Assembly (NCBI GenBank): GCA_009103225.1
Contig: RHPI01000810.1
Span: forward strand, 975,387-1,039,386
Source: Chlorokybus atmophyticus
Lineage: Eukaryota; Plantae; Mesostigma and Chlorokybus algae
Reading direction: 5' to 3'
DNA: 64,000 nt
In this document: in pieces, positions 1 through 21,865 of the stretch
Layout: each line of letters opens with the position of its first letter
Position numbering within the stretch: the first letter of the stretch is position 1
Notes under the pieces: generated by a model
The model's input: only the letters and a program-made list of their open reading frames with translations
Database searches by the model: none
Told to the model about the DNA's origin: nothing
Program-made: the position numbers and the translations under genes

Positions 1-670
1 ACCTGTTCTTGGCCGCAATGATGTGGAGGAGGTGGGGTCGACAAAACTCCAAAGCTTCTTGCGGATCAGCACCAACTTCATCTTCAGCGACCATGAAGCG
101 TAGTTGTGCAGATCAAGGGACTCGATGGGCATCCTATCTGTGTCAGCCATTACTTGCTACACAATAGTACAACTCACCCTCTCCCCAAGAACACTCTACT
201 AGTAGGCACCTATGCTCAACACTTTCTCTCACTAGCACAAGCAATCACACAAGCGAGTGTGGGCCCATAACCTGTTGAGAACTAGTGATGCGCCTAGTGT
301 GTGTGTATTTGCCTCTTACATACAAGTGTGCACACACTAAGGACAAGTGCAACAAGCACGCCAACTATAAAGACAATGTGCGACCCACTGTATTAAGTAG
401 TATACAGTGTCTTATATACTATGCTACTAAGCACTAGTCAACTCTAGTCAACTCTGGTCAAAGTCAACACTAGTCAACATTAGTCAATGGTCAAAGTCAA
501 CGGTCAAAGTCAAAGTTGACCATGGTTGACCATAACTGCCGTAACTGCCGTAACTCCCGTAACTCTCGTAACTCTAGTAACTCCCGTAACTATGAAGGTT
601 AAGCTGATCGTACCGACTACATGTAGGCGCCGCCTATACATGTACTTTCAACAAGCTATAACATTTAACA
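1..670 (-). mobile_element. Gag-only copia-type LTR element, 5' part (gag N-terminus 1-150, leader, PBS 260-272, 5' LTR 273-670); rest lies outside the window
   Basis: Reverse complement of the same LTR/PBS/gag start (MADTDRMP) seen in the full-length copies. The LTR abuts copia integrase codons at 671, i.e. it is inserted into the integrase. Confidence 0.92.
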
Positions 671-1296
671 CACTGCACCTCACACCCCCGAGCAAAACGG
701 TGCTGCTGAGCGTCTCAACCGCACACTTGTAGAGCGTGTGCGTGTCATGCTTACAGATGCAAAGCCGAAGAAAGCTTTATGGGCTGAGGCATTTGTCACG
801 GCCAACTACATCCATAACAGGTCACCTACGGACAACAAAGCCAAGACCCCGTGGGAGTTGTTGCATGGTGAGGCGCCCAATGTTATGCACATGCGTGTGT
901 TTGGAGCCAAGGCATATCCGCACATCCCTAAGCACTTGAGGAGGAAGCTGGAGAATGTGAGGGAGACAGGCGTCTTTATAGGATATGAGCCCAACTCCAA
1001 GGCGTACAGGATCTTGCATGAGGACGGCAAGATTATGGTTTGAAGGGATGTTGTCTCCGACGAGAAGATGGTGGCAACAACATTGACAACACCTTCACCA
1101 ATTATGGACATTAACATTACCAATGAGCCGGAGGTCGTCGTCGCACCACTTGTCAATATGGAGGTCGCTGGTTATGCGCCACACCTCGAGGAGGAAGTGA
1201 CTGCACCTGTTGAGGAGCAGGAGAGGCGCTACCCTCTACGAACGAGAGCGCCACCACACTTCACCCAAAGGCTTCAGGCTATGAGCGCTGATATCA

Positions 1297-2296
1297 TTGA
1301 GGATAAAGAGCCAAGCACCTACCATGAGGCCATTAGCTCCGGATGCAGAGTTGTGGCATAAGGCCATGGATGAGGAGATTGCTTCGCTTCACGCCAACAA
1401 AACTTGGGCACTTGAGCAGGTTCCACAAGGTGTGAGGCATATACTTGTCAAATGGGTGTTCAAGATAAAGCGTAACGACAAGGGCAACGTTGAGCGCTAC
1501 AAGGCGCAACTTGTGGCAAAGGGATTCCTTCAACAGGAGGGAGTTGACTACAAGGAGATATTTGCACCTGCCAGCAAGCACACAACTTTCAGAGCATTGC
1601 TCGCTAAGGTTGCTGTGGAGGACTTGGAGCTGGATCACCTAGATGTGAAGACTGCCTTCCTCTATGGAGAGTTGGAGGAACAAATCTTCGTGCAGCAACC
1701 TCAAGGGTACGAAGAGGGAGACACAGGCAAGGCATGCTTGGTACATAAGGCTTTGTATGGGCTTAGACAGGCACCATGTGTCTGGCACATTCGACTTAGC
1801 AAAGAGCTAGAAAAGATGGGCGTACAGCAGTCTGCAGCAGACTCTGGGCTCTTCATTAGTGAAGACGGACAAGTCTGGCTCCTCGTGTATGTTGATGACA
1901 TTATCCCGGCATCTGCGGATATTGCTGCAATAACCCGAATTAAGGTGACACTGCAATCTGCGTTCGAGATTCGCGACCTTGGAGATGCACACTTGTTCCT
2001 CGACATAGTCATCACCAGGATCAAAGATGCACCATCAAGATCACACAGAAGCAGATGGTGCTGTACTTACTCAAGAAGTTCAAGGTACAGGATGCAAAGG
2101 GCAAGGCAACACCACTAAGTGTGGGAGTACAGTTACTTAAGGCACGGGACACTGCTTTGTACTTGACAAGACTGTCTACCCCTACGGTGAGCTAGTAGGA
2201 AGTCTCATCTACTTGTCCATTGCTACAAGATCTGACATCGCGCAAGCCGTGGGAGTCTTGGCGAGGTACATGTCAGCACCCATTATCAAGCACTGG
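1297..2296 (+). pseudogene. Copia reverse transcriptase (RVT_2-type), disrupted
   Basis: ORF 1297-2118 with YVDD motif; continues in another frame through LVGSLIYL...[19 protein letters not shown] up to the insertion point. Confidence 0.9.
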
Positions 2297-4712
2297 ACTC
2301 ACACACGAGTTATATGCGACACACAGCTCATGCCGGGGGGTTGTTAAATGTTATAGCTTGTTGAAAGTACATGTATAGGCGGCGCCTACATGTAGTCGGT
2401 ACGATCAGCTTAACCTTCATAGTTACGGGAGTTACGAGAGTTACGAGAGTTACGGGAGTTACGGCAGTTATGGTCAACCATGGTCAACTTTGACTTTGAC
2501 CATTGACTTTGACCATTGACTAGTGTTGACTATTGTTGACTTTGACCAGAGTTGACTAGAGTTGACTAGTACTTAGTAGCATAGTATATAAGACACTGTA
2601 TACTGCTTAATACAGTGGGTCGCACATTGTCTCTATAGTTGGCGTGCTTGCTGCACTTGTCCTTAGTGTGTGCACACTTGTATGTAGGAGGCAAATACAC
2701 ACACACTAGGCGCATCACTAGTTCTCAACACTCGAGAGTTGTGGGACACTTTTGTTGACGCCCTACGTGATGATTTTATCAATGAGCAACGGAAGGTACG
2801 TACACAATCTTGGGAATATATATATTTGTAATTTACATGATACTGCGTGCTTATGTCCATTATACATGTGCGCTATGTATCAGAGAGGAGAACTTGCCAT
2901 GCGCAATAATGGACGATGTGTTACATGCGGCACGTGATTTGCAAAAGCTCTGACGTGGTATTGACCGCAGAGCTTCACTCGACAAGTTTGATCTCGGCCA
3001 TCTTATACCTGATGGATTTGATGACGAATGATCCGGTTGCACAAGGGTCGCTATGGGTCGATAGAGCGGGCATCGCGCTGGCCCCCCGTAGATGCGGCCT
3101 GAGACTGCATAGGCGCGGTCTTGTAACTGGTATGCCCCGCACCGGATGCATAAGATCCAGAGTAGCGGGGGGTTTACTGGCCCCGCCCCTTGTTGGCAGT
3201 GTAGGCCACCTTCGCCTTGGGCTTGGGCTGCGCCGCAGCTGCCTCCTTGATTGCCTTCTTAAGGCGCTTTGCCTCTGCATCAACTGTAGTTAGAGGGTCT
3301 CTCGTGAGCTCCTCCACCATTTTCCAACTATGCTTGTTGGCCACTTCCACATGGTGGAACTGCGTGCACACCTCGCCCAATGCTGGTGCACAGAGCACAT
3401 GTGAGCAACACTGGTTGCGGCCAATCATGCAGAGGCTCAGAGCCATTGGTTTTAATGCCAGGCGCACCCGCATTGACATCACCATCTCCCACATGCAAAT
3501 GTAATGGCAAACCTGTTGTGCTTTTTTCCTTGCTATGAATAGTCATAGTGTGAATACAAAGGTGGACATGCAAGGGTGTTAAGTGCGGGCCCTCCCCCCC
3601 CTACCGGACTCGGGGGGAGGAGGGATGCGGAACAATGTATGTATATAGATGCCTCTACGTAAATGATAAGCCCGCACCTTCATAAGGCCGATGATGCACG
3701 CATGTGCATGTTCGCATGAGTAAAGTCCGCACCCTCATGCGTGTCCTATATGTGTGCTCGTGCAAAAGGCCATGCTCAACAAAGAGTGAGCCCACCTTTC
3801 ATGTTGTCTTTGCGGCCTTTGGCAAAGTGGGGATCCTCGAAGAGGTGAGAGGGCACACGGTCGAAGGAGGCCGCCGCCGAGGCAATGTAAGCCGCCACGT
3901 CGACGTGTTGCCGAGCCCGCTTTTTCATGTTCTCCTTCCAAGGGATCGCGGGATCGTCAAAGCGAGTGGCCAATGCCTCCGCACGAGAATGCGGTGTAGT
4001 GGAGTCGCCTTTGTCGCGGCGAAGGATGCTTACAAGTAGCGGGTGGTTGGGCTCAATGACGGGCTCATTATGAGGGATGACGGGCGCCTTCCCACGCCTA
4101 AGACGCATGTTTTCCGCCTCCAACTCCTCCAACCTCCTCGCCATGGCCTCCGTGGGTGTTATGAACGGGGTGGAAGCGTTGGAGAGCGGGCTTGCCTCCC
4201 TCTTTTTACGCTTGTAAGTGACGACGGGCGGGTCCTCATCATCCTCGTCCTCATCATCATCACCATCACCCTCCTTGTTCACCTCCTCTTCTCCCACCTC
4301 CACGGGGGGGCGCACCCCGTCTCTCCTCACTCGCCGCTCTTCTTTCCTCCTCTTCACTCAAGGTGTGGCAACGCGGACTTGTAGCCCGCGCCAACCTATT
4401 GGCGGCCAGCCTAGCCGCCTTGGCCGTGGCTTCCACGTCCTCTCCATCGCCATGGGCACTTCTTGACCGTGTGGTGGTCATAGAGGTCGACCGCCTATTC
4501 TTCCTCCTAACCACCCACGCCACCCTCGCCAAGGATGGCGCCGCCGCGCTAGGGTTTCAAGCGACTAGGTAAGGAGCTTGTGACTCACAACTCACATCTG
4601 GTGAGTGCTTGTGCCCCCAAGTGCCCAAGGCACTAGGGGCACAAGAGTCTTATAACTCATTAACGAGTTCTTGAGTTCATGGGCGCGCATTTCATGCGCT
4701 TCATGAACTCAT
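2297..4712 (-). mobile_element. Insertion in the copia RT, with a DIRS/tyrosine-recombinase-retroelement-like gag and no pol
   Basis: Copia RT reads HW(T) to the left and AAKGVFCYL to the right, so this is an insertion. Minus-strand peptide VEVANKHSWKMVEELTRDPLTTVDAEAKRLKKAIKEA resembles the IADK..GW..VEEY..D.LA.D.EDEKR..KA motif of DIRS/Ngaro/PAT-like Gag (recalled motif, not searched). Upstream acidic/basic ORFs at 3776-4532. Confidence 0.45.
2342..2730 (+). repeat. Solo LTR of the gag-only family
   Basis: TGTTAAATG...TTCTCAACA, no PBS after it and no PPT before it. Flanks GGGGT / CTCGA do not form a TSD. Confidence 0.92.
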
Positions 4713-5258
4713 ATGAAGGCGGCTAAAGGAGTTTTTTGCTACCTTGGCAGCATTGTGAATAAGGGTATCATCTTTGGAAAGACGAAAGACATCACATTAC
4801 ATGGCAACTGTGGTGCAGTCTATGCTGGAAACCTCGACACGAGAAAGTCTACCACAAGTTACACTTTTGTAATGGGAGGAGGCGTCGTTAGCTGGAACAG
4901 TCGACTACAACCAACTGTTGCTGCGTCCAGTACTGAGGCCAAGTACATGGCGGCTTCATCTGCGGCGAGGAAGGACTGTGGCTTCGCAAGTTTGATCACC
5001 GACCTTAGGCATGCAGCGAGCTGTGTCACCATTTTATGTGACAACCAAGGAGCACTCAAGCTGAGCATGCACCTCATCACATTTGCCAGGTCGAAGCATA
5101 TTGACATTATGCACCCTTTGGTAAGCGAGAAAGTTGCACGTGGGGAAGTGGAGTTCAAGTACTGCAGCACTCAGGACATGCTCGCTGATTGCATGACAAA
5201 ACCACTACCACCAACCAAGTTTCATACATGCTGCATCGAGCTAGGAGTTGAAGGTTAA
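4713..5258 (+). pseudogene. Copia RNase H domain
   Basis: 181-aa ORF with copia RNase H motifs, followed by stop, GCGTGGGAG and LTR start TGTTAAA at 5275. Confidence 0.88.
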
Positions 5259-5274: not shown

Positions 5275-5649
5275 TGTTAAAGGTCTCTATGTAGGTGGCG
5301 CCGTAATTAAACTTCTACGATCAACTTATCTTCGGGAGTTATGGTCAACGATCGTTGTGGGAATTACGGGAGTTATAGTCAACCTTAGTCAATGTTGACT
5401 TTGACCATTGACTTTGACTTTAACTAGTGTTGACTTTGACTAGAGTTGACTAGTGTTGACTAGTGTTGACTAGCACTCACTAGTGTGCTATATAAGACAC
5501 TGTCTGTTGTGTAATACAGTAAGATCCACTCTGCTCTATTGTCAGCGCCACACTTGTGCTTGTCGTTGTTGCTACTGTGCAATCTTAATAGTGCACTACA
5601 AAGCATCTACCAAAACTTACTTGTGAAGCGGGGATCATAATAGCTCACA
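5275..5649 (+). repeat. 3' LTR, family B (LTR of the pol-bearing copia)
   Basis: TG...CA after the PPT. Shares TGTTAAA start, GGCGCC motif, TTGACY array and TATATAAGACACTGT with the gag-only LTR but has a different 3' half. Second copy at 14508-14882. Confidence 0.85.
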
Positions 5650-5919
5650 ATGCTTCGTGGTAGTCCGTGCGAACGAAAGACATGCTTCATAACAAGCTTG
5701 CTGCCTCTGGTCCCGTGCCAAATCCAAAACACGGTGCTGAATGTACCACTTTGCTAATTTTGTTAGCAAATACGAGTATATGTTAAATGTTATAGCTTGT
5801 TGAAAGTACATGTATAGGCGGCGCCTACATGTAGTCGGTACAATCAGCTTAACCTTCATAGTTACGGGAGTTACGAGAGTTACGAGAGTTACGGGAGTTA
5901 CGAGAGTTACGAGAGTTAT

Positions 5920-6039
5920 GGTCAACCATGGTCAACTTTGACTTTGACCGTTGACTTTGACCATTGACTAATGTTGACTAGTGTTGACTTTGACCAGAGT
6001 TGACTAGAGTTGCCTAGTGCTTAGTAGCATAGTATATAA
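5920..6039 (+). promoter_or_regulatory. LTR U3 promoter: array of 11 TTGAC(C/T) (W-box) motifs at 5920-6005 plus TATA box TATATAA at 6033-6039 (representative copy)
   Basis: 9 forward TTGACY and 2 reverse GGTCAA counted directly. The same array is present in every complete LTR of the family. That it binds WRKY factors is inference. Confidence 0.6.
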
Positions 6040-6178
6040 GACACTGTATACTGCTTAATACAGTGGGTCGCACATTGTCTCTATAGTTGGCGTGCTTGTT
6101 GCACTTGTCCTTAGTGTGTGCACACTTGTATGTAAGAGGCAAATACACACACACTAGGCGCATCACTAGTTCTCAACA

Positions 6179-6191
6179 GGTTATGGGCCCA
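6179..6191 (+). other. Primer binding site GGTTATGGGCCCA, complementary to the anticodon arm of initiator tRNA-Met (half-molecule priming)
   Basis: Directly abuts the 5' LTR in all copies; same type of PBS as Drosophila copia, yeast Ty5 and Volvox Osser. Confidence 0.85.
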
Positions 6192-6300
6192 CACTCGCTT
6201 GTGTGATCGCTTGTGCTAGTGAGAGAAAGTGTTGAGCATAGGCGCCTACTAGTAGAGTGTTCTTGGGGAGAGGGTGAGTTGTACTATTGTGTAGCAAGTA

Positions 6301-7086
6301 ATGGCTAACACTGATAGGATGCCCATCGAGTCCCTTGATCTGCACAACTACGCTTCATGGTCGCTGAAGATGAAGTTGGTGCTGATCCGCAAGAAGCTTT
6401 GGAGTTTTGTCGACCCCACCTCCTCCACATCATTGCGGCCAAGAACAGGTGACACTGGTACCTGGACAGAGAACTCACAATCAGCTTTTGCGCTGATAGG
6501 CTTGCACGTCAAAGACTTCCATCTCCCTCTTATTGCGGATTGCAAGACTGGACGTGAGGCGTGGGAGGTCTTCGACACCCTCTTCAAGGCCAATAGCAAC
6601 TCGCGCAAGTTGCAGCTGAGACGCAAGCTGACACTTCTGAAGATGGAGCACAAAGAGCCAATCCAGAAGTACATCTCGCGTGCAAGGGAGCTTTGGCAAG
6701 ACCTTGCAGCAGTGGGCCACGATGTGAAGGAAGAGGAGGTGATGTGGGCAGTCTTAGCTGGCTTAGGAAAGAGCTTTGCTACGCTAGTGACTGTGTTGGA
6801 GTCCTCAGATGTGGTTTTGAAGTTTGCTGATGTAGTGCCTAAGCTGCTAGCTGTGGAAGGCAAGTTGGATGTTCAGGAGATAGAGAATGGTGGAGAACCT
6901 ATCGCACTTTCTGCCTCATCTTCTCAACACACACGAAACAGGAGCAAAGCAGGTGGTGGGAAGCCATCACGTGACAAAGAGTGTCACTACTGCAAGATGA
7001 AGGGCCACTTCATTCGCGAGTGCCAGAAGAGGATCCACGATGAGGCAACCAAGGGAGAGCACGCCACGATGGCGATTGCTTTCTAG
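6301..7086 (+). CDS. Retrotransposon Gag, 261 aa, intact (copia gag/UBN2-like core, CCHC knuckle CHYCKMKGHFIREC)
   Basis: ATG 122 bp after the LTR; NYASWSLKMKLVL..KKLW, ..EAWEVFDTLF, LRRKL..LKM, VLAGL..SF..LVTVLE motifs; ends AIAF-TAG. Confidence 0.93.
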   Translation: MANTDRMPIESLDLHNYASWSLKMKLVLIRKKLWSFVDPTSSTSLRPRTGDTGTWTENSQSAFALIGLHVKDFHLPLIADCKTGREAWEVFDTLFKANSNSRKLQLRRKLTLLKMEHKEPIQKYISRARELWQDLAAVGHDVKEEEVMWAVLAGLGKSFATLVTVLESSDVVLKFADVVPKLLAVEGKLDVQEIENGGEPIALSASSSQHTRNRSKAGGGKPSRDKECHYCKMKGHFIRECQKRIHDEATKGEHATMAIAF

Positions 7087-7724
7087 CATTGGTGAGGACC
7101 TCAAGGAGTTGCAGTGGATGGTGTTCGTCCGTCCTCTCCCACTGCAAGGGCGCGTGAAGGACATGCGTAGACGGAGGTCGCAGACACAAAGGTCTGTGAG
7201 AGTTACTGCTAGCCTATGAGTAGTTACTGGTGTTGAGCTGCATACACTAGAGGTTGCATTGCTGTGAGGTTGTTTTTTGGTAGCACACAGGTGTGCGGTA
7301 CTAGTTAGAACACTTCACTTGATTGGCATGCAAGGACTGAGTTGTATAGCTAGCTAACAGGAGATGGGAGGGGTGCTTCCTTGGTAGAAGGGTCTGATCA
7401 ACCCTTGCACGGACTACACTCTGGTACAGCATTGCTAAGGTAGAGAACTCATTGTAGTTTATAGCATAGTTTGCCATCGAGGGAGTCCTCGAAACCATCT
7501 GAGCAAGGTCAGGCGTGGCGTGGTGGAACCTGATGCGACAACTATGAGGAGGAAACAAGGAGTAATGGAACCTTGTAGTTCTGCTGGCAGCACAAGGAGA
7601 AAGATAGTGTCATGGAGACAAGCATCGAGTCCGTGGGAGCAACAGATCCGTGGGAGTGTTCAATGGAGTAAGTTAATGTGGGTAAGCTTGCGAGAAGATC
7701 TTGGAGTTCAAGGTCAAGCTGCTC

Positions 7725-7733
7725 GCGTGGGAG
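7725..7733 (+). other. Short polypurine-tract-like GCGTGGGAG before the 3' LTR
   Basis: Same sequence precedes every 3' LTR and the family B LTR at 5275. Confidence 0.75.
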
Positions 7734-9384
7734 TGTTAAATGTTATAGCTTGTTGAAAGTACATGTATAGGCGGCGCCTACATGTAGTCGGTACGATCAG
7801 CTTAACCTTCATTGTTACGGGAGTTACGGGAGTTACGAGAGTTATGGACAACCATGGTCAACTTTGACTTTGACCATTGACTTTGACCATTGACTAATGT
7901 TGACTAGTGTTGACTTTGACCAGAGTTGACTAGAGTTGACTAGTGCTTAGTAGCATAGTATATAAGACACTGTATACTGCTTAATACAGTGGGTCGCACA
8001 TTGTCTCTATAGTTGGCGTGCTTGCTGCACTTGTCCTTAGTGTGTGCACACTTGTATGTACGAGGCAAATACACACACACTAGGCGCATCACTAGTTCTC
8101 AACAGTATAGCGTGGTACCCTTTTGTTGTTTTCGTTAACCCCGTCATATAGTCCATAGTAACTTGCTCCCTCTTGGACAATGGCACGGGAAGAGGTGGCA
8201 GCAACCCACCTGGCTTTTGGTTGCTTGCTTTCACCCTTTAACATGCGTCGCATGACGCCACATAATTGCGTACAATACAATGCATCTCTTACAAGTCAAG
8301 GCGTTGCTTCAAGCTTGCTAACGTCCTCTCCACTCCTTGGTGGACAGCAACGGGTACGTCATGAGCTTCCTTTGAAAGTTGAACGCGTATATGTGCAACA
8401 TTGGGGATGTACAAGCGGCCATGATGCCAAGTAGGCTGTCTTGCTTTGTCTAATATCCACTTGTGTCGGTTGCTATGCTCTCTATGTCCCGCAACACTCT
8501 CCTACCTTCTGTGTCTACGCAATGCACTTGTCGGATCAGCTCAGCCAACTCCGGTTGCACTTAATCGAGTGCTTTGATCGCACTCAATTGGCTTAGTGCG
8601 TCGGCCACACTATTAGATGTACCAAGCTTATACTTGATATTAACATATAAAAGTTGAAACGACCACCGCGTTGGTATTCGGCTAAGATGTGGTTATTTGT
8701 AAGTACCTCAATGGGGAATGGTCTTTCTCCAGCACGAACCTTTCCCCTCAAGAAAGCATCGCCATTGTCACAGCGCCATTACTTGCGCCAATAAGTCCTT
8801 CTCGTGCACAGGGTAGTTCAGCTCTGCTCTAATCCATTTTTGACTAATGCGCGCTACAAGTTGAAGACCCATGCCTTGGTCTTGTTAAATGTTATAGCTT
8901 GTTGAAAGTACATGTATAGGCGGCGCCTACATGTAGTCGGTACGATCAGCTTAACCTTCATAGTTACGGGAGTTACGAGAGTCACGAGAGTTACGGCAGT
9001 TATGGTCAACCATGGTCAACTTTGACTTTGACCATTGACTTTGACCATTGACTAGTGTTGACTAGTGTTGACTTTGACCAGAGTTGACTAGAGTTGCCTA
9101 GTGCTTAGTAGCATAGTATATAAGACACTGTATACTGCTTAATACAGTGGGTCGCACATTGTCTCTATAGTTGGCGTGCTTGTTGCACTTGTCCTTAGTG
9201 TGTGCACACTTGTATGTAAGAGGCAAATACACACACACTAGGCGCATCACTAGTTCTCAACAGGTTATGGGCCCACACTCGCTTGTGTGATTGCTTGTGC
9301 TAGTGAGAGAAAGTGTTGAGCATAGGTGCCTACTAGTCGAGTATTCTTGGGGAGAGGGTGAGTTGTACTATTGTGTAGCAAGTA

Positions 9385-10173
9385 ATGGCTGATACAGATA
9401 GGATGCCCATCGAGTCCCTTGATCTGCACAACTACGCTTCATGGTCGCTGAAGATGAAGTTGGTGCTGATCCGCAAGAAGCTTTGGAGTTTTGTCGACCC
9501 CACCTCCTCCACATCATTGCGGCCAAGAACAGGTGACACTGGTACCTGGACAGAGAACTCACAATCAGCTTTTGCGCTGATAGGCTTGCACGTCAAAGAC
9601 TTCCATCTCCCTCTTATTGCGGATTGCAAGACTGGACGTGAGGCGTGGGAGGTCTTCGACACCCTCTTCAAGGCCAATAGCAATGCGCGCAAGTTGCAGC
9701 TGAGACGCAAGCTGACACTTTTGAAGATGGAGCACAACGAGCCAATCCAGAAGTACATCTCGCGTGCAAGGGAGCTTTGGCAAGACCTTGCAGCAGTGGG
9801 CCACGACGTGAAGGAAGAGGAGGTGATGTGGGCAGTCTTGGCTGGCTTAGGAAAGAGCTTTGCTACGTTAGTGACTGTGTTAGAGTCCTCAGATGTGGTT
9901 TTAAAGTTTGCTGATGTAGTGCCTAAGCTGCTAGCTGTGGAAGGCAAGTTTGATGTTCATGAGAATGGTGGAGAACCTATTGCACTTTCTGCCTCATCTT
10001 CTCAACACACACAAAGCAAGAGCAAAGCAGGTGGTGGGAAGCCATCACGTGACAAAGAGTGTCACTACTGCAAGATGAAAGGCCACTTTATTCGCGAGTG
10101 CCAGAAGAGGATCCACGATGAGGCAACCAAGGAGGAGCACGCCACGATGGCGATTGCTTTCCAGCATTGGTGA
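9385..10173 (+). CDS. Gag, 262 aa, intact (usual TAG changed to CAG, stops three codons later)
   Basis: Uninterrupted ORF near-identical to 6301-7086. Confidence 0.92.
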   Translation: MADTDRMPIESLDLHNYASWSLKMKLVLIRKKLWSFVDPTSSTSLRPRTGDTGTWTENSQSAFALIGLHVKDFHLPLIADCKTGREAWEVFDTLFKANSNARKLQLRRKLTLLKMEHNEPIQKYISRARELWQDLAAVGHDVKEEEVMWAVLAGLGKSFATLVTVLESSDVVLKFADVVPKLLAVEGKFDVHENGGEPIALSASSSQHTQSKSKAGGGKPSRDKECHYCKMKGHFIRECQKRIHDEATKEEHATMAIAFQHW

Positions 10174-10727
10174 GGACCTCAAGGAGTTGTAGTGGATGGT
10201 GTTCGTCCGTCCTCTCCCATTGCAAGGGCGCGTGAAGGACATGCGCAGACGGAGGTCGCAGACACAAAGGTCTGTGAGAGTTGCTGCTAGCCTATGAGTA
10301 GTTGCTGGTGTTGAGCTGCATACACTAGAGGTTGCATTGCTGTGGAGTTGTTTTTTGGTAGCACACAGGTGTGCGGTACTGGATAGAACACTTCAATTAA
10401 TTGGCATGCAAGGACTGAGTTGTGTAGCTAGCTAACAGGAGATGGGAGGGGTGCTTTCCTTGGTAGAAGGGTCTGATCAACCCTTGCACGGCCTACACTC
10501 TGGTACAGCATTGCTAAGGTAGAGAACTCATTGTAGTTTATAGCATAGTTTGCCATCGAGGGAGTCCTCGAAACCATCTGAGCAAGGTCAGGCGTGGCGT
10601 GGTGGAACCTGATGCGACAACTATGAGGAGGAAACAAGGAGTAATGGAACCTTGTAGTTCTGCTGGCAGCACGAGGAGAAAGATGGTGTCATGGAGACAA
10701 GCATCGAGTCCGTGGGAGCAACAGATC

Positions 10728-13074
10728 TGTTAAATGTTATAGCTTGTTGAAAGTACATGTATAGGCGGCGCCTACATGTAGTCGGTACGATCAGCTTAAC
10801 CTTCATAGTTACGGGAGTTACGAGAGTTAGGAGAGTTACGGGAGTTACGGGAGTTACGAGAGTTATGGTCAACCATGGTCAACTTTGACTTTGACCGTTG
10901 ACTTTGACCATTGACTAATGTTGACTAGTGTTGACTTTGACCAGAGTTGACTAGAGTTGACTAGTGCTTAGTAGCATAGTATATAAGACACTGTATACTG
11001 CTTAATACAGTGGGTCGCACATTGTCTCTATAGTTGGCGTGCTTGTTGCACTTGTCCTTAGTGTGTGCACACTTGTATGTAAGAGGCAAATACACACACA
11101 CTAGGCGCATCACTAGTTCTCAACAGGTTATGGGCCCACACTCGCTTGTGTGATCGCTTGTGCTAGTGAGAGAAAGTGTTGAGCATAGGCGCCTACTAGT
11201 AGAGTGTTTTTGGGGAGAGGGTGAGTTGTACTATTCTGTAGCAAGTAATGGCTGACACTGATAGGATGCCCATCGAGTCCCTTGATCTGCACAACTACGC
11301 TTCATGGTCGCTGGAGATGAAGTTGGTGCTGATCCGCAAGAAGCTTTGGAGTTTTGTCGACCCCACCTCCTCCACATCATTGCGGCCAAGAACAGGTGAC
11401 ACTGGTACCTGGACAGAGAACTCACAATCAGCTTTTGCGCTGATAGGCTTGCACGTCAAAGACTTCCATCTCCCTCTTATTGCGGATTGCAAGACTGGAC
11501 GTGAGGCGTGGGAGGTCTTCGACACCCTCTTCAAGGCCAATAGCAATGCGCGCAAGTTGCAGCTGAGACGCAAGCTGACACTTTTTAAGATGGAGCACAA
11601 CGAGCCAATCCAGAAGTACATCTCGCGTGCAAGGGAGCTTTGGCAAGACCTTGCAGCAGTGGGCCACGACGTGAAGGAAGAGGAGGTGATGTGGGCAGTC
11701 TTAGCTGGCTTAGGAAAGAGCTTTGCAACGCTAGTGACTGTGTTGGAGTCCTCAGATGTGGTTTTGAAGTTTGCTGATGTAGTGCCTAAGCTGCTAGCTG
11801 TGGAAGGCAAGTTGGATGTTCATGAGATAGAGAATGGTGGAGAACCTATCGCACTTTTTGCCTCATCTTCTCAACACACACGAAACAGGAGCAAAGCAGG
11901 TGGTGGGAAGCCATCACGTGACAAAGAGTGTCACTACTGCAAGATGAAGGGCCACTTCATTCGCGAGTGCCAAAAGAGGATCCACGATGAGGCAACCAAG
12001 GAGGAGCACGCCACGATGGCGATTGCTTTCTAGCATTGGTGAGGACCTCAAGGAGTTGCAGTGGATGGTGTTCGTCCGTCCTCTCCCACTGCAAGGGCGC
12101 GTGAAGGACATGCGCAGACGGAGGTCGTAGACACAAAGGTCTGTGAGAGTTACTGCTAGCCTATGAGTAGTTACTGGTGTTGAGCTGCATACACTAGAGG
12201 TTGCATTGCTGTGGAGTTGCTTTTTGGTAGCACACAGGTGTGCGGTACTGGATAGAACACTTCAATTGATTGGCATGCAAGGACTGAGTTGTATAGCTAG
12301 CTAACAGGAGATGGGAGGGGTGCTTTCCTTGGTAGAAGGGTCTGATCAACCCTTGCACGGCCTACACTCTGGTACAGCATTGCTAAGGTAGAGAACTCAG
12401 TGTAGTTTATAGCATAGTTTGCCATTTAGGGAGTCTTCGAAACCACTTGAGCAAGGTCAGGCGTGGCGTGGTGGAACCTAATGCGACAACTATGAGGAGG
12501 AAACAAGGAGTATTGAAATCTTGTAATGCTGGTGGCAGCATGAGGAGAAAGATGGTGTCATGGAGACAAGCATCGAGTCCGTGGGAGCAACAGATCCGTT
12601 GGAGTGTTCAATGGAGTAAGTTAATGTGGGTAAGCTTGCGAGAAGATCTTGGAGTTCAAGGTCAAGCTGCTCGCGTGGGAGTGTTAAATGTTATAGCTTG
12701 TTGAAAGTACATGTATAGGCGGCGCCTACATGTAGTCGGTACGATCAGCTTAACCTTCATAGTTACGGGAGTTACGAGAGTTACGAGAGTTACGGGAGTT
12801 ACGGCAGTTACGGCAGTTATGGTCAACCATGGTCAACTTTGACTTTGACCGTTGACTTTGACCATTGACTAATGTTGACTAGTGTTGACTTCGACCAGAG
12901 TTGACTAGAGTTGACTAGTGCTTAGTAGCATAGTATATAAGACACTGTATACTGCTTAATACAGTGGGTCGCACATCGTCTCTATAGTTGGCGTGCTTGT
13001 TGCACTTGTCCTTAGTGTGTGCACACTTGTATGTAATAATACACACACACTAGGCGCATCACTAGTTCTCAACA
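10728..13074 (+). mobile_element. Nested full-length gag-only element (LTRs 10728-11125, 12682-13074)
   Basis: TSD AGATC at 10723-10727 and 13075-13079 inside the 3' internal region of the outer copy. Confidence 0.95.
11248..12033 (+). CDS. Gag, 261 aa, intact
   Basis: Uninterrupted ORF, CCHC knuckle, AIAF-TAG end. Confidence 0.92.
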   Translation: MADTDRMPIESLDLHNYASWSLEMKLVLIRKKLWSFVDPTSSTSLRPRTGDTGTWTENSQSAFALIGLHVKDFHLPLIADCKTGREAWEVFDTLFKANSNARKLQLRRKLTLFKMEHNEPIQKYISRARELWQDLAAVGHDVKEEEVMWAVLAGLGKSFATLVTVLESSDVVLKFADVVPKLLAVEGKLDVHEIENGGEPIALFASSSQHTRNRSKAGGGKPSRDKECHYCKMKGHFIRECQKRIHDEATKEEHATMAIAF

Positions 13075-14487
13075 AGATCCGTGGGAGTGTTCAATGGAGT
13101 AAGTCAATGTGGGTAAGCTTGCGAGAAGATCTTGGAGTTCAAGGTCAAGCTGCTCGCGTGGGAGTGTTAAATGTTATAGCTTGTTGAAAGTACATGTATA
13201 GGCGGCGCCTACATGTAGTCGGTACGATCAGCTTAACCTTCATAGTTACGGGAGTTACGAGAGTCACGAGAGTTACGGCAGTTATGGTCAACCATGGTCA
13301 ACTTTGACTTTGACCATTGACTTTGACCATTGACTAGTGTTGACTAGTGTTGACTTTGACCAGAGTTGACTAGAGTTGACTAGTGCTTAGTAGCATAGTA
13401 TATAAGACACTGTATACTGCTTAATACAGTGGGTCGCACATTGTCTCTATAGTTGGCGTGCTTGTTGCACTTGTCCTTAGTGTGTGCACACTTGTATGTA
13501 AGAGGCAAATACACACACACTAGGCGCATCACTAGTTCTCAACAGGTCTTGCTGTATCATAGCTCCCACAGTTGTGTCGGATGCGTCACAAGTTACATTG
13601 AAGGGTTTATCCATATCGGGGTGAGCCCAGACGGGTGCCTCTAATAACGCCTTCTTCAATGCAGCAAATGCATGCTCTTCCCTTAAAGACCAGCTCCAAA
13701 ACTTCCCTTTCTTGTGTAGGGTGGTCAAGGAGGCTGCACCGCACGAAAATCCCATAAAAACCTGCGATAATCCCCGCAAGGCCCAAGCACGACATTATCT
13801 CCTTGACGTTGGTTGGGGCAGACCATTCGCACACCACTTGCACTTTGTTGGGTCCGGCATAATCCCTTCGTGTAATACAATGTGGCTTAAGTACTCCACC
13901 TTGCATAGCAGTAACGTGCACTTATATAGCAAAGCACAACTTGTGCTCGCGTAAATATTGCAACACGCGAAGACTCACATGCTCGTCCCTCGTCTTCGTG
14001 TACGTTAACATGTTGTCGAGGTACACGGGGACTCCCTTACCCAGCAAGTCAACAAAAACGCTGATCATCAATGTCTAAAATGTCGCTAGTGCGTGCGTAA
14101 GCCCAAACAAAATCACTAACCACTCATAATGTCCACAGCGCACATTTAACGCTGCGCTTTGCGTGGGCCGCTTCAAGCAATTAAATGTTAACTATTATGT
14201 TGAACCGCACACGTAACACTTGCACACGCTGCTACTTGCTTCACCACGTCCACCGTGCTTCGCCACGCCGTTACACGTGTGTATGGCACCCACCTCGATT
14301 GGTGATGGTTAAATAAGCTCCACCTTCCTTTGCACGCTGTGAATTTTTTGCCCCTTGTGTCCATGCATGTTGAAAGCTTCTCCCCTAGACTGATTACCAC
14401 GCTCTTGCTTGCTCCCACGCCTGCAGTCAGCATTTGTTGCAAAAGACTTGAAGTACAACGCGATGAGACACTCCGCGATGCGTATAG

Positions 14488-15145
14488 TTGAATTGCTTGC
14501 ATGGGAGTGTTAAAGGTCTCTATGTAGGTGGCGCCTTAACTAAACTTCTACGATCAACTTATTTTCGAAAGTTATGGTCAACGGTCGTTGTGGGAATTAC
14601 GGCAGTTATGGTCAACCTTGGTCAACGTTGACTTTGACCATTGACTTTGACTTTAACTAGTGTTAACTTTGACTAGAGTTGACTAGTGTTGACTAGTGTT
14701 GACTAGCACTCATAAGTGTGCTATATAAGACACTGTCTGTTGTGTAATACAGTAAGATCCACTCTGCTCTATTGTCAGCGCCACACTTGTGCTTGTCGTT
14801 GTTGCTATTGTGCAATCTTAATAGTGCACTACAAAGCGTCTACCAAAACTTACTTGTGAAGCGGGGATCATGATAGCTCACAATGCTTCATGGTAGTCCG
14901 TGCGAACGAAAGACATGCTTCATAACAAGCTTGCTGCCTCTGGTGCCGTGCCAAATCCACAACACGGTGCTGAATGTACCATTTTGCTAATTTTGTTAGT
15001 GAATACGAGTATTGCGTGGTACCCTTTTGTTGTTTTCGTTAACCCCGTCATAAAGTCCATAGTAACTTGCTCCCTCTTGGACAATGGCACGGGAAGAGGT
15101 GGCTGCAACCCACCTGGCTTTTGGTTGCTTGCTTTCACCCTTTGA
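14488..15145. repeat. Local duplication: PPT remnant + LTR B (14508-14882) + gypsy integrase fragment
   Basis: Closely matches 5260-5780 joined to 8110-8240, without the gag-only insertion. Confidence 0.85.
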
Positions 15146-15480
15146 CATGCGTCGCACGACTAGGACATTGATGCTTGAAGCGACCACACTCGCCACAACG
15201 CCAACACTCCTTGCCGTTACCATAAGAGCCTTTCTGCACCAAAAGCTGTAGCTGCTCCTAATCCTTCTTCCCACCCTCTCTTTTGCAAGCGCTGCTCTCT
15301 TTGAAGAAGCCGTGATAATACGCCATCAAGTGTTAACTCCTCCGTGGCAGACTCCATGATAGTCACCACCACCTTGTACTCCTTTGGCAACCCGTACAAC
15401 ACAACCCACACCACTTTTTGCTCCTTTAGCTCGTGCCCAACACTCAACAAGTCCTTCTACAGCGCCTTTGCTCGCGCCAC
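15146..15480 (-). pseudogene. Gag fragment of a different copia family
   Basis: VGHELKEQKVVWVVLYGLPKEYKVVVTIMES...LSRLLQREQR, followed in another frame by CWRCGECGRFKHQC knuckle. Confidence 0.75.
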
Positions 15481-16453
15481 GAACTTGGTGATGGGCACCA
15501 TGCGCCGAGCTGTTGCCAATAATGCTCATATGTTTTACTTGCTGGTGTCGACACTAATGAGGCGGAGGCACAAACTCTTGGCCATGCTCTTGGACAGCAC
15601 GTGCATCGCGTCCATAACAGGATCACGCACAGGGTCAAACCCGTACAATTTGTCAAAGCATGCTATAAGAATTGATCCCCCACTGTCGAGTAACGCCTGC
15701 CGCCTCTCCTTTTTCCGTAGGTGGCAGTCCAATAGCATCTAGCTTGTGCAACTCCGCACTACGCCTGGCCAATTCAGCCGTGCGTGTTATGCCCCCCCCC
15801 CCCCCCCCCCCCCCCCCNCCTACGTGCCATGCTGCCCCCCCCGCTCGTCGAGTGGTGATGGAGCCTTTTATTATCATCGTATATGTAGAATGAGGACATC
15901 TCAGCTTTCTTTACATAGACAAAGGTGTTGTCGGGTTGCTGGATGCAACGGTTGCGGATTGTCTTTGGGACCTTCACACCCTTGAGCAGAAGGCGTTGGC
16001 AGGGAATGCGTGCCTGCATACCATTGAAGCGCCCGACGTGACACTGCATCGGGTGATCTCCCGTCCACAGCATCAGCATGGCATGAAGACACAACTTGCC
16101 CGCTTCGCCCTTTGAAATGGGCCTTATATAGTCAATGGCGACGCCTTTTTCAAACAGATCTTGCAGCTCATAGATCAGAGGCTTACGCAAGGGGTCCATG
16201 TTATTTTAGCCCGTAGGCACATTGTCTGCTTGAATAAACATGACTGGCATTAGCGAGTCGTTGCGGCACGCTGTTGCTGTGCCTGCATGCGAGCCGGCTG
16301 AAATGTCCTGGTACGCAATGCATAAAGTGGTCATCATTGAAATTAATTGTCAATGCAACACAGGAACTGTAGGCGCAAGTTTTGGTAATGGGTTGTTAAT
16401 ACAGCATGCACACGACATGCACTATTGTCATCTTGAGTACCGCTATTCAGTAC
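15481..16453 (-). mobile_element. CACTA/En-Spm-like transposase remnant
   Basis: PLIYELQDLFEKGV...AMLMLWTGDHPMQCHVGRFNG..ARIPC and GFDPVRDPVMDAMHVL resemble Tnp2-type motifs (recalled, not searched). Confidence 0.6.
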
Positions 16454-17471
16454 TGTTGAGAACTAGTGATGCGCGTAGTGTGTGTGTATTTGCCTCTTAC
16501 ATACAAGTGTGCACACACTAAGGACAAGTGCAGCAAGCACGCCAATTATAGAGACAATGTGCGACCCACTGTATTAAGCAGTATACAGTGTCTTATATAT
16601 ATACTATGCTACTAAGTACTAGTCAACTCTAGTCAACTCTGGTCAAAGTCAACACTAGTCAACACTAGTCAATGGTCAAAGTCAACATTGACCATGGTTG
16701 ACCATAACTGCCGTAACTCCCGTAACTCTCGTAACTCCCATAACTATAAAGGTTAAGCTGATCGTACCAACTACATGTAGGCGCCGCCTATACATGCACT
16801 TTCAACAAGCTATAACATTTAACACTCCCACGCGAGCAGCTTGACCATGAACTCCAAGTTCTTCTCGCAAGCTTACCCACATTAACTTACTTCATTGAAC
16901 ACTTCCACGGATTTGATGCTCCCACGGACTTGATGATTGTCTCCATGACACCATCCTTCTCCTCGTGCTGCCAGCAAAACTACAAGGTTCCAATACTCTT
17001 TGTTTCCTCCTCATAGTTGTCGCATCAGGTTCCACCACGCCACGCCTGACCTTGCTCAAGTGGTTTTGAAGACTCCCTAAATGGCAAACTATGCTATAAA
17101 CTACACTGAGTTCTCTACCTTAGCAATGCTGTACCAGAGTGTAGGCCGTGCAAGGGTTGATCAGACCCTTCTACCAAGGAAGCACCCCTCCCATCTCCTG
17201 TTAGCTAGCTATACAACCCAGTCCTTGCATGCCAATTAAGTGAAGTGTTCTAACTAGTACCGTACACCTGTGTGCTACCAAAAAACAACTCCACAGCAAT
17301 GCAACCTCTAGTGTATGCAGCTCAACACCAGCAACTACTCATAGGCTAGCAGTAACTCTTACAGACCTTTGTGTCTGCGATCTCCGTCTATGCATGTCCT
17401 TCACGCGCCCTTGCAGTGGGAGAGGACGGACGAACACCATCCACTGCAACTCCTTGAGGTCCTCACCAATG

Positions 17472-18251
17472 CTAGAAAGCAATTGCCATCGTGGCGTGCT
17501 CCTCCTTGGTTGCCTCATTGTGGATCCTCTTCGGGCACTCGCGAATGAAGTGGCCCTTCATCTTGCAGTAGTGACACTATTTGTCACGTGATGGCTTCCC
17601 ACCACCTGCGTTGCTACGTGTGTGTTGAGAAGATGAGGCAGAAAGTGCAATTGGTTCTCCACCATTCTCTATCTCCTGAACATCCAACTTGCCTTTCACA
17701 GCTAGCAGCTTAGGCACTACATCAGCAAACTTCAAAACCACATCTGAGGACTCCAACACAGTCACTAGCGTAGCAAAGCTCTTTCCTAAGCCAGCTAAGA
17801 CTGCCCACATCACCTCCTCTTCCTTCACGTCGTGGCCCACTGCTGCAAGGTCTTGCCAAAGCTCCCTTGCACGCGAGATGTACTTCTGAATTGGCTCTTT
17901 GTGCTCCATCTTCAAAAGTGTCAGCTTGCGTCTCAGCTGCAACTTGCGCGAGTTGCTGTTGGTCTCGAAGAGGGTGTCGAAGACCTCCCACGCCTCACGT
18001 CCAGTCTTGCAATCCGCAATAAGAGGGAGATGGAAGTCTTTGACGTGCAAGCCTATCAGCGCAAAAGCTGATTGTGAGTTCTCTGTCCTGGTACCAGTGT
18101 CACCTGTTCTTGGCCGCAATGATGTGGAGGAGGTGGGATCGACAAAACTTTAGAGCTTCTTGCGGATCAGCACCAACTTCATCTTCAGCGACCATGAAGC
18201 GTAGTTGTGCAGATCAAGGGACTCGATGGGCATCCTATTTGTGTCAGCCAT
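17472..18251 (-). pseudogene. Gag with premature stops (after KKL and after RDK)
   Basis: TGG>TAA near 18150 and GAG>TAG at 17577; 6-nt deletion giving HTRSNAGGG. Confidence 0.88.
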
Positions 18252-19391
18252 TGCTTGCTACACAATAGTACAACTCACCCTCTCCCCAAGAACACTCTAC
18301 TAGTAGGTGCCTATGCTCAACACTTTCTCTCACTAGCACAAGCGATCACACAAGCGAGTGTGGGCCCATAACCTGTTGAGAACTAGTGATGCGCCTAGTG
18401 TGTGTATATTTGCCTCTTACATACAAGTGTGCACACATTAAGGACAAGTGCAGCAAGCACGCCAACTATAGAGACAATGTGCGACCCACTGTATTAAGCA
18501 GTATACAGTGTCTTATATATATACTATGCTACTAAGTACTAGTCAACTCTAGTCAACTCTGGTCAAAGTCAACACTAGTCAACACTAGTCAATGGTCAAA
18601 GTCAACATTGACCATGGTTGACCATAACTGCCGTAACTCCCGTAACTCTCGTAACTCCCATAACTATAAAGGTTAAGCTGATCGTACCAACTACATGTAG
18701 GCGCCGCCTATACATGCACTTTCAACAAGCTATAACATTTAACACTCCCACGCGAGCAGCTTGACCATGAACTCCAAGTTCTTCTCGCAAGCTTACCCAC
18801 ATTAACTTACTTCATTGAACACTTCCACGGATTTGATGCTCCCACGGACTTGATGATTGTCTCCATGACACCATCCTTCTCCTCGTGCTGCCAGCAAAAC
18901 TACAAGGTTCCAATACTCTTTGTTTCCTCCTCATAGTTGTCGCATCAGGTTCCACCACGCCACGCCTGACCTTGCTCAAGTGGTTTTGAAGACTCCCTAA
19001 ATGGCAAACTATGCTATAAACTACACTGAGTTCTCTACCTTAGCAATGCTGTACCAGAGTGTAGGCCGTGCAAGGGTTGATCAGACCCTTCTACCAAGGA
19101 AGCACCCCTCCCATCTCCTGTTAGCTAGCTATACAACCCAGTCCTTGCATGCCAATTAAGTGAAGTGTTCTAACTAGTACCGTACACCTGTGTGCTACCA
19201 AAAAACAACTCCACAGCAATGCAACCTCTAGTGTATGCAGCTCAACACCAGCAACTACTCATAGGCTAGCAGTAACTCTTACAGACCTTTGTGTCTGCGA
19301 TCTCCGTCTATGCATGTCCTTCACGCGCCCTTGCAGTGGGAGAGGACGGACGAACACCATCCACTGCAACTCCTTGAGGTCCTCACCAATG

Positions 19392-20171
19392 CTAGAAAGC
19401 AATTGCCATCGTGGCGTGCTCCTCCTTGGTTGCCTCATTGTGGATCCTCTTCGGGCACTCGCGAATGAAGTGGCCCTTCATCTTGCAGTAGTGACACTAT
19501 TTGTCACGTGATGGCTTCCCACCACCTGCGTTGCTACGTGTGTGTTGAGAAGATGAGGCAGAAAGTGCAATTGGTTCTCCACCATTCTCTATCTCCTGAA
19601 CATCCAACTTGCCTTTCACAGCTAGCAGCTTAGGCACTACATCAGCAAACTTCAAAACCACATCTGAGGACTCCAACACAGTCACTAGCGTAGCAAAGCT
19701 CTTTCCTAAGCCAGCTAAGACTGCCCACATCACCTCCTCTTCCTTCACATCGTGGCCCACTGCTGCAAGGTCTTGCCAAAGCTCCCTTGCACGCGAGATG
19801 TACTTTTGGATTGGCTCTTTGTGCTCCATCTTCACAAGTGTCAGCTTGCGTCTCAGCTGCAACTTGCGCGAGTTGCTGTTGGCCTTAAAGAGGGTGTCGA
19901 AGACCTCCCACGCCTCACGTCCAGTCTTGCAATCCGCAATAAGAGGGAGATGGAAGTCTTTGACGTGCAAGCCTATCAGCGCAAAAGCTGATTGTGAGTT
20001 CTCTGTCCAGGTACCAGTGTCACCTGTTCTTGGCCGCAATGATGTGGAGGAGGTGGGGTCGACAAAACTCCAGAGCTTCTTGCGGATCAGCACCAACTTC
20101 ATCTTCAGCGACCATGAAGCGTAGTTGTGCAGATCAAGGGACTCGATGGGCATCCTATCTGTGTCAGCCAT
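19392..20171 (-). pseudogene. Gag truncated at 224 aa before the zinc knuckle
   Basis: ORF 19497-20171; same RDK-stop and 6-nt deletion as the neighbouring unit. Confidence 0.88.
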
Positions 20172-20682
20172 TGCTTGCTACACAATAGTACAACTCACCC
20201 TCTCCCCAAGAACACTCTACTAGTAGGTGCCTATGCTCAACACTTTCTCTCACTAGCACAAGCGATCACACAAGCGAGTGTGGGCCCATAACCTGTTGAG
20301 AACTAGTGATGCGCCTAGTGTGTGTATATTTGCCTCTTACATACAAGTGTGCACACATTAAGGACAAGTGCAGCAAGCACGCCAACTATAGAGACAATGT
20401 GCGACCCACTGTATTAAGCAGTATACAGTGTCTTACATACTATGCTACTAAGCACTGGTCAACTCTGGTCAACTCTGGTCAAAGTCAACACTAGTCAACA
20501 CTGGTCAATGGTCAAAGTCAGCGGTCAAAGTCAAAGTTGACCATGGTTGACCATGACTGCCGTAACTGCCGTAACTCTCCTAACTCTTGTAACTCCCGTA
20601 ACTATAAAGGTTAAGCTGATCGTACCAATTACATGTAGGCGCCACCTATACATGTACTTTCAACAAGCTATAACATTTAACA

Positions 20683-21865
20683 GCAGGCAAGTATGGATTG
20701 GTTTACAACCACTGTTCTACCCATGATATACAGGTAGTAGCGGGACCATAGTTGCAACTGGCCTTGGATTTTCTTCACGACTGCTGCAGGGAGACCTATA
20801 GCGGCACCCGTAGCATAACATAGCAGCATCCCTATGTGCTAGCCAAGAGACCCCAGCGCAGAGGAGGGGGGGAGCGGCGTGCAAGACTCAACATGATGCC
20901 TACCGACTTGCGATATTCAAGAAGAGAGTCCGAAGCAATAGTCCGCCATGATGTTTGTAAAATTCAATAACTGCACCAATCATTGCAATGAGGATGGCCA
21001 TGTCATCAAAAAAGGCATACTATCAACGCTCCCCCACATCTTTCATGTCGCATGCAGCACCCTCCTATATATCATCATCGGAGGGGAGAAGGCGGAGACC
21101 CATAAGAAAGGAAAAGGGACGTAGCATCTAGCCCAACGCTTCTGATGCAAGATTGAAGACAGAGTATGGCACCACTCAAGCGGAGGGGGGAGTGAGATTC
21201 TTCGCGATGCCCCCTTTGACCTGCCCGAGCAATGTGGAGCTGCAGCTATAGTGTAGCGTCTGCAGAACAGGAGGCATTAACGGGCGCAGTGGAGACATCC
21301 TTCATGAAATGTACCACCCAAACATCCAATGCGAAGGGGTTCTGTTGAGAGCTGAAAAGCGCGGAAACTTCATTCCATCAGACCCACGAGGCCACCACCA
21401 TTCCGCCCATCATGGTGCACGCAGCTGACACCCGTGCTCCAGTGCATCTTCACGCTACAACAGCAGCGCGACCCCGGCAGAGCGAACGGCTGAGGGTGGG
21501 AAGGATGCATGCGCGTCACACCCAACCACAAGCACGAGCTCGCATATCGCAGCAGCAAGGAGTGGAAAAGCACCGTGGGCTGCTTGCCAAGAGATGCATT
21601 CCAAGCACACGAGGACGGAGGGTGTAACGGGAGCAATAATAATCAGGGTATTATTGCTACCTACATAACACATTCTGTATGAATAAGTATATAATATATG
21701 CTTATTTATACCTCTTTTCTACGATTCCTCGCTGAAAGGCTTGTCATAGGCGGTGTGGGTGTTGGGTAGAGGATTGAAGGGGCATCACCGGCGACGGTGG
21801 TGCTGTTACAGAGGGGACCGAGAAGGTGAGGGTGCAGATTGGTGCTGCCCAGCTGGTTCCCCGCC
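20683..21865 (-). repeat. Duplicate of the L1-like RT segment at 37601-38781
   Basis: Near-identical sequence with scattered substitutions, including the LTR|GCAGGCAAGT junction; ends at an N gap. Confidence 0.88.

Follow-up and report, generated by a model that had tools for sequence, protein, structure and literature searches.

A predicted enhancer of multimerised TTGAC sites in Ty1/copia LTRs from Chlorokybus, a streptophyte alga

Dense arrays of the hexamer TTGACY lie upstream of the TATA box in retrotransposon LTRs of the streptophyte alga Chlorokybus atmophyticus, and they raise the question of which Chlorokybus protein reads TTGAC and whether the link between W-boxes and WRKY proteins predates land plants. 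The arrays were analysed in a window of 64,000 nucleotides (GenBank assembly GCA_009103225.1, contig RHPI01000810.1), and all coordinates given here are positions in that window. A pattern search of both strands of the whole window identified 264 TTGACY sites, compared to 67.5 ± 8.9 in dinucleotide-preserving shuffles; 264 sites were reached in 0/100 shuffles. Mapping by self-BLAST delimited 20 copia LTR segments (8.1 kb), which contain 217 of the 264 sites; the original prediction had given about 19 LTR segments and some 200 sites. Outside the LTRs there were 46 sites in 55.9 kb, where about 55 would be expected by chance, and no TTGACY clusters were found in this remaining part of the window. 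The enrichment of TTGACY in the LTRs is genuine. Since the LTR copies are non-independent samples, amounting to about 20 copyings of one inherited array, this enrichment represents a single inherited structure that has been multiplied, not 200 separate events.

Two LTR families, A and B, carry the arrays. LTR A (399 bp, 5781-6179, plus strand), with the termini TGTTA...CAACA, is the 5' LTR of a gag-only copia element that extends from 5781 to 8104. The internal region of this element (6180-7733, plus strand) encodes gag (ORF at 6301-7086; Pfam Retrotran_gag_2, E=1.5e-31), which is the sole ORF of the 2.3-kb element, and no pol domain was detected by Pfam in 6180-7733. The PPT-like sequence GCGTGGGAG at 7725-7733 abuts the 3' LTR (7734-8104, plus strand; 11 TTGACY sites), and a 5-bp target-site duplication, GTATA, flanks the element at 5776-5780 and 8105-8109. 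The termini, the duplication and the copia-type gag and pol domains (gag only in family A) identify these sequences as Ty1/copia elements.

Self-BLAST of the window revealed 17 near-full copies of LTR A with 88-99% identity. Copies with 12 sites are located at 272-670 (minus strand), 2342-2730 (plus strand), 13165-13545 (plus strand, preceded by 90 bp of the internal 3' end) and 26870-27258 (minus strand), and a copy with 10 sites at 28958-29339 (minus strand). Family A also forms two tandem LTR-internal-LTR-internal-LTR arrangements. The one at 8883-13074 (plus strand) has its LTRs at 8883-9263, 10728-11126 and 12682-13074, with 11-12 sites per LTR, and the one at 16453-20682 (minus strand) has its LTRs at 16453-16824, 18373-18744 and 20293-20682, with 10-11 sites per LTR; two of the latter LTRs lack one 13-bp double unit. 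A young complete gag-only element is found at 33458-35786 (plus strand; LTRs at 33458-33847 and 35398-35786, 12 sites each), immediately followed by a decayed gag-only element at 35787-37600 (minus strand; LTRs at 35787-36131, which is truncated, and 37211-37600, 10 sites each). An older gag-only copy, whose gag is 80% identical to that of family A, has a diverged LTR, designated A', at 24912-25246 (plus strand), with five intact sites and five degenerate units.

The first copy of LTR B begins with TGTTAAAGG at 5275 and follows an ORF (4707-5258) with its stop codon and a GGGAG PPT. This ORF we take to be the C-terminus of a copia Pol, as read from its location beside the LTR and from recognised residue patterns in a stretch without Pfam coverage. 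The copy is split at 5780 by the family A element, its 5' part occupying 5275-5780 (plus strand), and it resumes at 8110; the remainder (8110-8256, plus strand) is 97% identical to 15014-15160. The second copy of LTR B (14508-15160, plus strand) is uninterrupted over about 650 bp and carries 11 TTGACY sites at 14576-14704 and a TATATAAG box at 14722-14729. A fragment of an autonomous copia pol, comprising the integrase C-terminus/SH3 and reverse transcriptase (Pfam SH3_retrovirus, 2.9e-19; RVT_2, 5.6e-57), is situated between A LTRs at 672-2115 (plus strand). Integrase and reverse-transcriptase fragments lie upstream of the first LTR B copy.

In LTR A the array (5920-6015, plus strand) consists of two antisense units, ATGGTCAACY, followed by nine intact sense units and one degenerate sense unit. 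There are 11 TTGACY hexamers at 5920-6005, nine on the plus strand and two on the minus strand (5920 and 5930), which is the number originally counted. The degenerate twelfth unit, TTGCCT, lies at 6010-6015, and the expectation that copies without this change would have 12 sites was confirmed in eight A copies; the other A copies have 10-11, so that 10-12 sites per LTR is typical. Sense units are spaced at 6, 7, 6, 7, 10, 10, 6, 10 and 10 bp. The TATA box, TATATAAG, is at 6043-6050 (plus strand), which is 37 bp from 6005, not 28 bp as had been stated, and 27 bp from the degenerate unit. Where the twelfth unit is intact, TATATAAG lies 17 bp beyond the end of the array, and three LTR copies read TATGTAAG in place of TATATAAG. 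Directly upstream of the LTR A array tandem repeat finder (TRF) detected a 9-bp repeat, AGTTACGRG (6.6 copies, 5860-5918, plus strand); the number of repeats differs between the aligned LTR copies, from about 3 to about 7.

The array of LTR B (5343-5471, plus strand) is the positional homologue of that of LTR A and has the predicted 12 sites, nine on the plus strand and three on the minus strand, ahead of a TATATAAG box at 5489-5496 (plus strand). One of these sites, at 5343, stands apart from the dense block at 5377-5471, which begins 29 bp further downstream. The placement of the arrays in U3, directly upstream of the TATA box in both LTR families, was thus supported. The array covers about 96 bp of U3 upstream of gag and is made up of 2-3 antisense and 8-10 sense units; as a whole it has the sense orientation in all copies.

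LTR A and LTR B both start with TGTTAAA, and they could be aligned by BLAST and MAFFT over about 160 bp only, a stretch that runs from the array through the TATA box to some 30 bp beyond it. In a global alignment the identity was 78-90% over positions 121-280 of LTR A, with 65% at positions 161-200, where LTR B has an 11-bp deletion; outside positions 121-280 it was 35-60%, which is near noise. The sequence GACACTGT...TAATACAG that adjoins the LTR A TATA box is also conserved with family B. The units of the two arrays match one to one, the B array differing by this 11-bp deletion and by an additional unit of 10 bp; apart from these two changes the different spacing that had been attributed to family B was not observed. 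The one-to-one units and an alignment confined to this module indicate that the array in both families is a retained ancestral module, not a product of convergence. Capture of the sites by each family separately is not supported, given a module that is 66-90% identical in LTRs that otherwise barely align.

At the 3' end of its internal region, family A has about 30 nt that are homologous to the end of pol and the PPT of family B, and both end in GCGTGGGAG. From this homology and the common LTR termini, family A is judged to have arisen by internal deletion from an autonomous copia element resembling family B. The presence of a common promoter module in gag-only and pol-bearing elements makes their co-regulation plausible. 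The original prediction held that satellite and helper are co-induced through one host WRKY factor; the common promoter module and the relation of parasite to helper, as seen in the PPT, the pol end and the termini, favour this proposal, but the identification of the factor as a WRKY protein was not supported in that form.

Conservation of the motif was assessed by comparing family A with two B copies, with the A motif positions used as a mask. The TTGAC positions were identical in 54/55 and 53/55 columns (96-98%), compared to 74-79% identity in the spacers, 64-82% at hexamer position 6 and 61-68% in the flanks. In a control in which uniform 25% divergence was followed by MAFFT realignment, the mean core identity was 76% and the maximum 88% (150 runs). 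In a second control, carried out without alignment, neutral substitution at 20-33% left 1.5-3.7 of 12 motifs intact, and at least 11 intact motifs were obtained in 0/20,000 trials (P below 5e-5). Since neither alignment bias nor neutral decay was sufficient in these simulations, the TTGAC core is concluded to be under purifying selection. The retention of the pentamer at 10-12 positions across two LTR families that have otherwise drifted makes an unusually clean natural footprint. Such a comparison of sequences appears to define the functional core as TTGAC without naming its reader.

The diverged A' LTR at 24912-25246 has lost five of its 10 units, and its cores and spacers are 82% and 81% identical, respectively, to those of family A. 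Cores that decay in the same way as spacers indicate that TTGAC is no cold spot for mutation. As a check, the original prediction had proposed to test whether substitutions in the LTRs avoid the TGAC core. Fitch counting on a FastTree tree of the 17 LTR A copies, a comparison that is underpowered because the copies are young, gave 7 changes at 60 TTGAC sites and 76 at 343 other sites, a non-significant trend (p = 0.06; p = 0.13 when CpG sites were left out). Such a weak signal is expected, since young copies differ mostly by neutral changes that followed their insertion.

The array is probably a multimerised TTGAC enhancer in the U3 region of the Chlorokybus Ty1/copia LTRs, in which the module would serve to bind an activator. 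According to this prediction a host activator would be recruited by the TTGAC multimer to the TATA promoter in U3, and TATATAAG would position the start of RNA polymerase II transcription about 30 bp downstream of itself. Family A would have inherited the module of array, TATA box and start from the helper lineage, with its LTR otherwise reduced essentially to the kept termini. Both families would respond to the same host TTGAC reader, and the parasite would be transcribed alongside its supplier of Pol. Selection on transposition-competent lineages would preserve the TTGAC pentamers while whole units come and go. Titration of the factor and a dispersed-enhancer action, both suggested originally, may be regarded as speculative consequences of the array.

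Several proteins could be the reader. A WRKY-type protein is the single likeliest, although it is put forward tentatively, a TALE KNOX/BELL dimer comes next as a rather unlikely candidate, and the remaining probability belongs to another factor. As one form of the enhancer, it is possible rather than probable that the sites act as W-boxes for a WRKY protein of the host, which would confer stress or defence inducibility like that of ATCOPIA93. The TTGAC(C/T) sites are clustered, as W-boxes would be, at 10-12 per LTR, and within the LTR segments 217/218 of the pentamers are followed by a pyrimidine (TTGACY) and 1/218 by a purine (TTGACR). The sequence TTGACTTT, found in three to four units of each LTR, contains the WT-box GACTTT. 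This box (AAAGTC) is bound by most WRKY proteins, WRKYGKK variants included; the Arabidopsis WRKYGKK variants favour the WK-box and still bind the WT-box, and the preference of angiosperm GKK variants is shifted to these two boxes (PMC12630144). Clustered W-boxes are functional in an Arabidopsis copia LTR (PMC6043853), and WRKY proteins are ancestral to green plants, the sister genus Mesostigma having one gene. In contrast, a published census lists no WRKY gene for Chlorokybus atmophyticus; the counts are 0 in Chlorokybus, 1 in Mesostigma, 2 in Klebsormidium and 1 in Chlamydomonas (PMC7455551 Suppl. Table 8, Li et al. 2020). A second WRKY census of Chlorokybus was not found in the Nature Plants genome paper and its supplements or in the Zygnema paper. 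The claim that a WRKY protein reads the array is therefore a motif match set against a census value of zero for the host.

Constraint at position 6 of the hexamer, which could have favoured a WRKY reader, could not be demonstrated statistically. All of the approximately 10 changes at this position were transitions (10/10, against a background transition fraction of 0.76; p = 0.065), and at this level of significance the pyrimidine preference cannot separate WRKY from TALE. That a W-box-reading factor is functional in Chlorokybus and has retrotransposon promoters as its commonest genomic targets is a doubtful prediction. If it is true, WRKY/W-box control of copia elements would be older than land plants, and the LTR array would be a ready bait for finding the factor.

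The enhancer might instead be read by a TALE homeodomain pair, KNOX with a BELL-like partner, that recognises tandem TTGAC sites and acts as a developmental or life-cycle switch and not in stress; this reading is considered unlikely. About five adjacent pairs per LTR, such as TTGACtTTGAC and TTGACcaTTGAC, have linkers of 1-2 nt, and these pairs have the arrangement described for tandem sites, namely a pair of TGAC cores that includes one or two TTGAC motifs and is separated by no more than 4 nt (PMC3904721). Potato BEL5/POTH1 binds twin TTGAC sites with 0-4-nt linkers in any orientation, as determined by EMSA at eight promoters (PMC3904721). The TTGACTTGAC sequence of the StBEL5/POTH1 targets resembles TTGACTTTGAC of the Chlorokybus LTRs in its TTGAC tandem with a short linker; unlike the TATA-adjacent 12-unit arrays in transposons, each of these targets is one isolated pair at a long distance upstream of a host gene (PMC3904721). 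The census that lists no WRKY gene records one HD_KNOX1 gene and 12 bZIP genes for Chlorokybus (PMC7455551 Suppl. Table 8). The zygote element ZYRE of Chlamydomonas, a proposed target of the KNOX/BELL pair GSM1/GSP1, has a YGAC core in common with the array (PMC4889651). On the other hand, HD_BEL was 0 in Chlorokybus, as it was in every alga of the census (PMC7455551). Half of the units are 10 bp apart, which corresponds to a 5-nt linker and exceeds the published TALE range. TALE sites known from other systems are mostly TGACAG-like, a sequence absent from the array. Chlorokybus is not known to reproduce sexually, which also counts against a life-cycle reader.

The array might also be a neutral minisatellite in U3, kept long through slippage at replication and template switches of the reverse transcriptase and binding no factor, an explanation that is improbable. 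Whole-unit indels of 10, 13 and 11 bp distinguish the copies, TRF reported nested periods of 10, 13, 16, 26 and 36 bp, the last three units of the B array look recently duplicated, and the within-family substitution test was non-significant. Duplication of units can regenerate motifs without selection on each of them, which counts against selection acting core by core. Similar TTGACY repeats were present in unrelated metagenome contigs, most of them bacterial-looking. These contigs, 22 in an exact-pattern scan, carry TTGACTTTGACC-type repeats of TTGACY at 6-7 bp, several of them in intergenic context that looked bacterial by eye, and no similarity to the LTR flanks was visible in these 22 matches; such arrays can therefore arise without any WRKY logic. 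In the gag relatives (loci L023-L029, at best no more than 41% identical and on small contigs of other samples) TTGACY was at chance level.

However, slippage copies spacers as well as motifs, yet only the pentamer was conserved between the families, at 96-98% compared to 74-79% for the spacers and above the values simulated. A minisatellite of this kind would have a uniform unit and period and substitutions at all positions alike, and the comparison between families did not give this result. The periods are mixed (6, 7 and 10 bp), both orientations are present, the spacers vary from unit to unit, and both families keep the units at fixed distances from the TATA box. Whole units of 10-13 bp are gained and lost as the array evolves; slippage provides this variation but not the pentamer-specific preservation. 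U3 is also present in the genomic RNA, at its 3' end. A role at the RNA level, in which UUGAC repeats or GGUCAAC/GUUGACC hairpins would act in packaging or stability of parasite and helper alike, is very improbable, since the better folding of the array RNA than of shuffles (-40.4 kcal/mol, z = -2.7) is modest and trivially due to the two inverted units, LTR-element packaging signals normally lie in the 5' leader, and such a role, although most units are sense-oriented, leaves the tight TATA spacing unexplained.

As a predicted enhancer the array belongs with a principle that is already known, the capture of host transcription-factor sites by copia LTRs. Tnt1 carries repeated BII boxes in U3 and Tto1 carries 13-bp MYB sites. 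In ONSEN/ATCOPIA78 a heat-responsive element is bound by heat-shock factor (PMC12786077). These three elements resemble the Chlorokybus families in having a host stress-factor site captured or multimerised in a copia U3; they differ in their motifs and factors (HSF, MYB) and in having fewer repeats (2-4 units). In the LTR of ATCOPIA93 (EVD/ATR) two W-boxes are required for induction by PAMPs and travel with solo LTRs (PMC6043853, Zervudacki et al. 2018). ATCOPIA93 is alike in being a Ty1/copia element with TTGACY upstream of the transcription start. It has two sites proven by mutation, whereas Chlorokybus has 10-12 putative sites in about 96 bp, and its host differs from Chlorokybus, for which no WRKY gene is annotated. 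Arabidopsis has a large WRKY family.

What is new is the occurrence of such an array in the earliest-diverging streptophyte algal lineage, its density of 10-12 sites per 96 bp or so, and the mismatch with the annotated transcription-factor repertoire. Host transcription-factor sites borne on LTRs explain when transposons awaken, and host genes later acquire inducible enhancers from such LTRs. BARE-2 with BARE-1 and Dasheng with RIRE2 exemplify non-autonomous LTR elements in which the signals of an autonomous partner's LTR are retained. Like BARE-2 and Dasheng, family A is a parasite that lacks Pol and still carries the PPT, promoter and LTR ends inherited from its helper lineage. Unlike them, its LTR has diverged beyond alignment except for the termini and the array with the TATA box, and its gag is intact. 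Family A documents a gag-only parasite that has retained just the promoter, ends and PPT of its helper lineage.

The window also contains a host ORF of 550 aa (55055-56707) that is 100% identical to EukProt jgi/Chlat1/584, a match that identifies the genome as that of Chlorokybus atmophyticus CCAC 0220. The current name of this strain is C. melkonianii.

Comparison of the sequence flanking two different minus-strand copies of LTR A, the approximately 399-bp LTR of the gag-only copia family (family A), revealed that 20683-21865 and 37601-38781 were 98% identical over 1.18 kb. Part of the growth of the island is therefore due to segmental duplication and not to fresh insertions; its LTR copies consequently do not all represent independent events.

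The gag-only element also occurred as head-to-tail arrays at two places, 8883-13074 on the plus strand and 16453-20682 on the minus strand. Both had the structure LTR-internal-LTR-internal-LTR, with neighbouring units having an LTR in common. Such shared-LTR tandems have been linked to unequal crossing-over or to integrase-independent, recombination-mediated insertion (PMC12786077), which is noteworthy for an element that lacks an integrase of its own.

A copy of LTR B, the LTR of the pol-bearing copia lineage (family B), was interrupted by a gag-only element at 5781-8104, which was flanked by a clean 5-bp target duplication, GTATA (5776-5780 and 8105-8109). The LTR pair of this element was just 91% identical, and its 3' LTR carried a 27-bp deletion within the 9-bp-repeat region. 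Two further gag-only copies formed a fold-back arrangement at 24912-27258; the plus-strand arm was a diverged copy with a gag 80% identical to that of family A, and the minus-strand arm was a younger copy, truncated and inverted, that joined the diverged copy at 26340/26345. Just downstream of the uninterrupted second LTR B copy (14508-15160, plus strand), a gag-like fragment was located on the opposite, minus strand (15262-15495); it was 41% identical to residues 120-197 of the family A gag and may be what is left of a third lineage of copia elements.

The 9-bp repeat, AGTTACGRG, occupied 5860-5918 and the corresponding position in each of the LTR A copies, adjoining the TTGAC array on its upstream side. 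Its copy number differed between LTR A copies, from approximately three to seven; in family B there were just one or two AGTTAY-GGTCAAC composites. To our knowledge AGTTACGRG matches no nameable motif; the repeat might serve as a site for a second factor.

An exact-pattern scan detected TTGACY tandem repeats of 6-7 bp in 22 metagenome contigs. These repeats are unrelated to the LTRs. Several, including some from rumen samples, were immediately upstream of genes beginning ATGAAAAAA, and the gene context of several looks bacterial by eye; the repeats could represent a recurrent bacterial promoter-region microsatellite.
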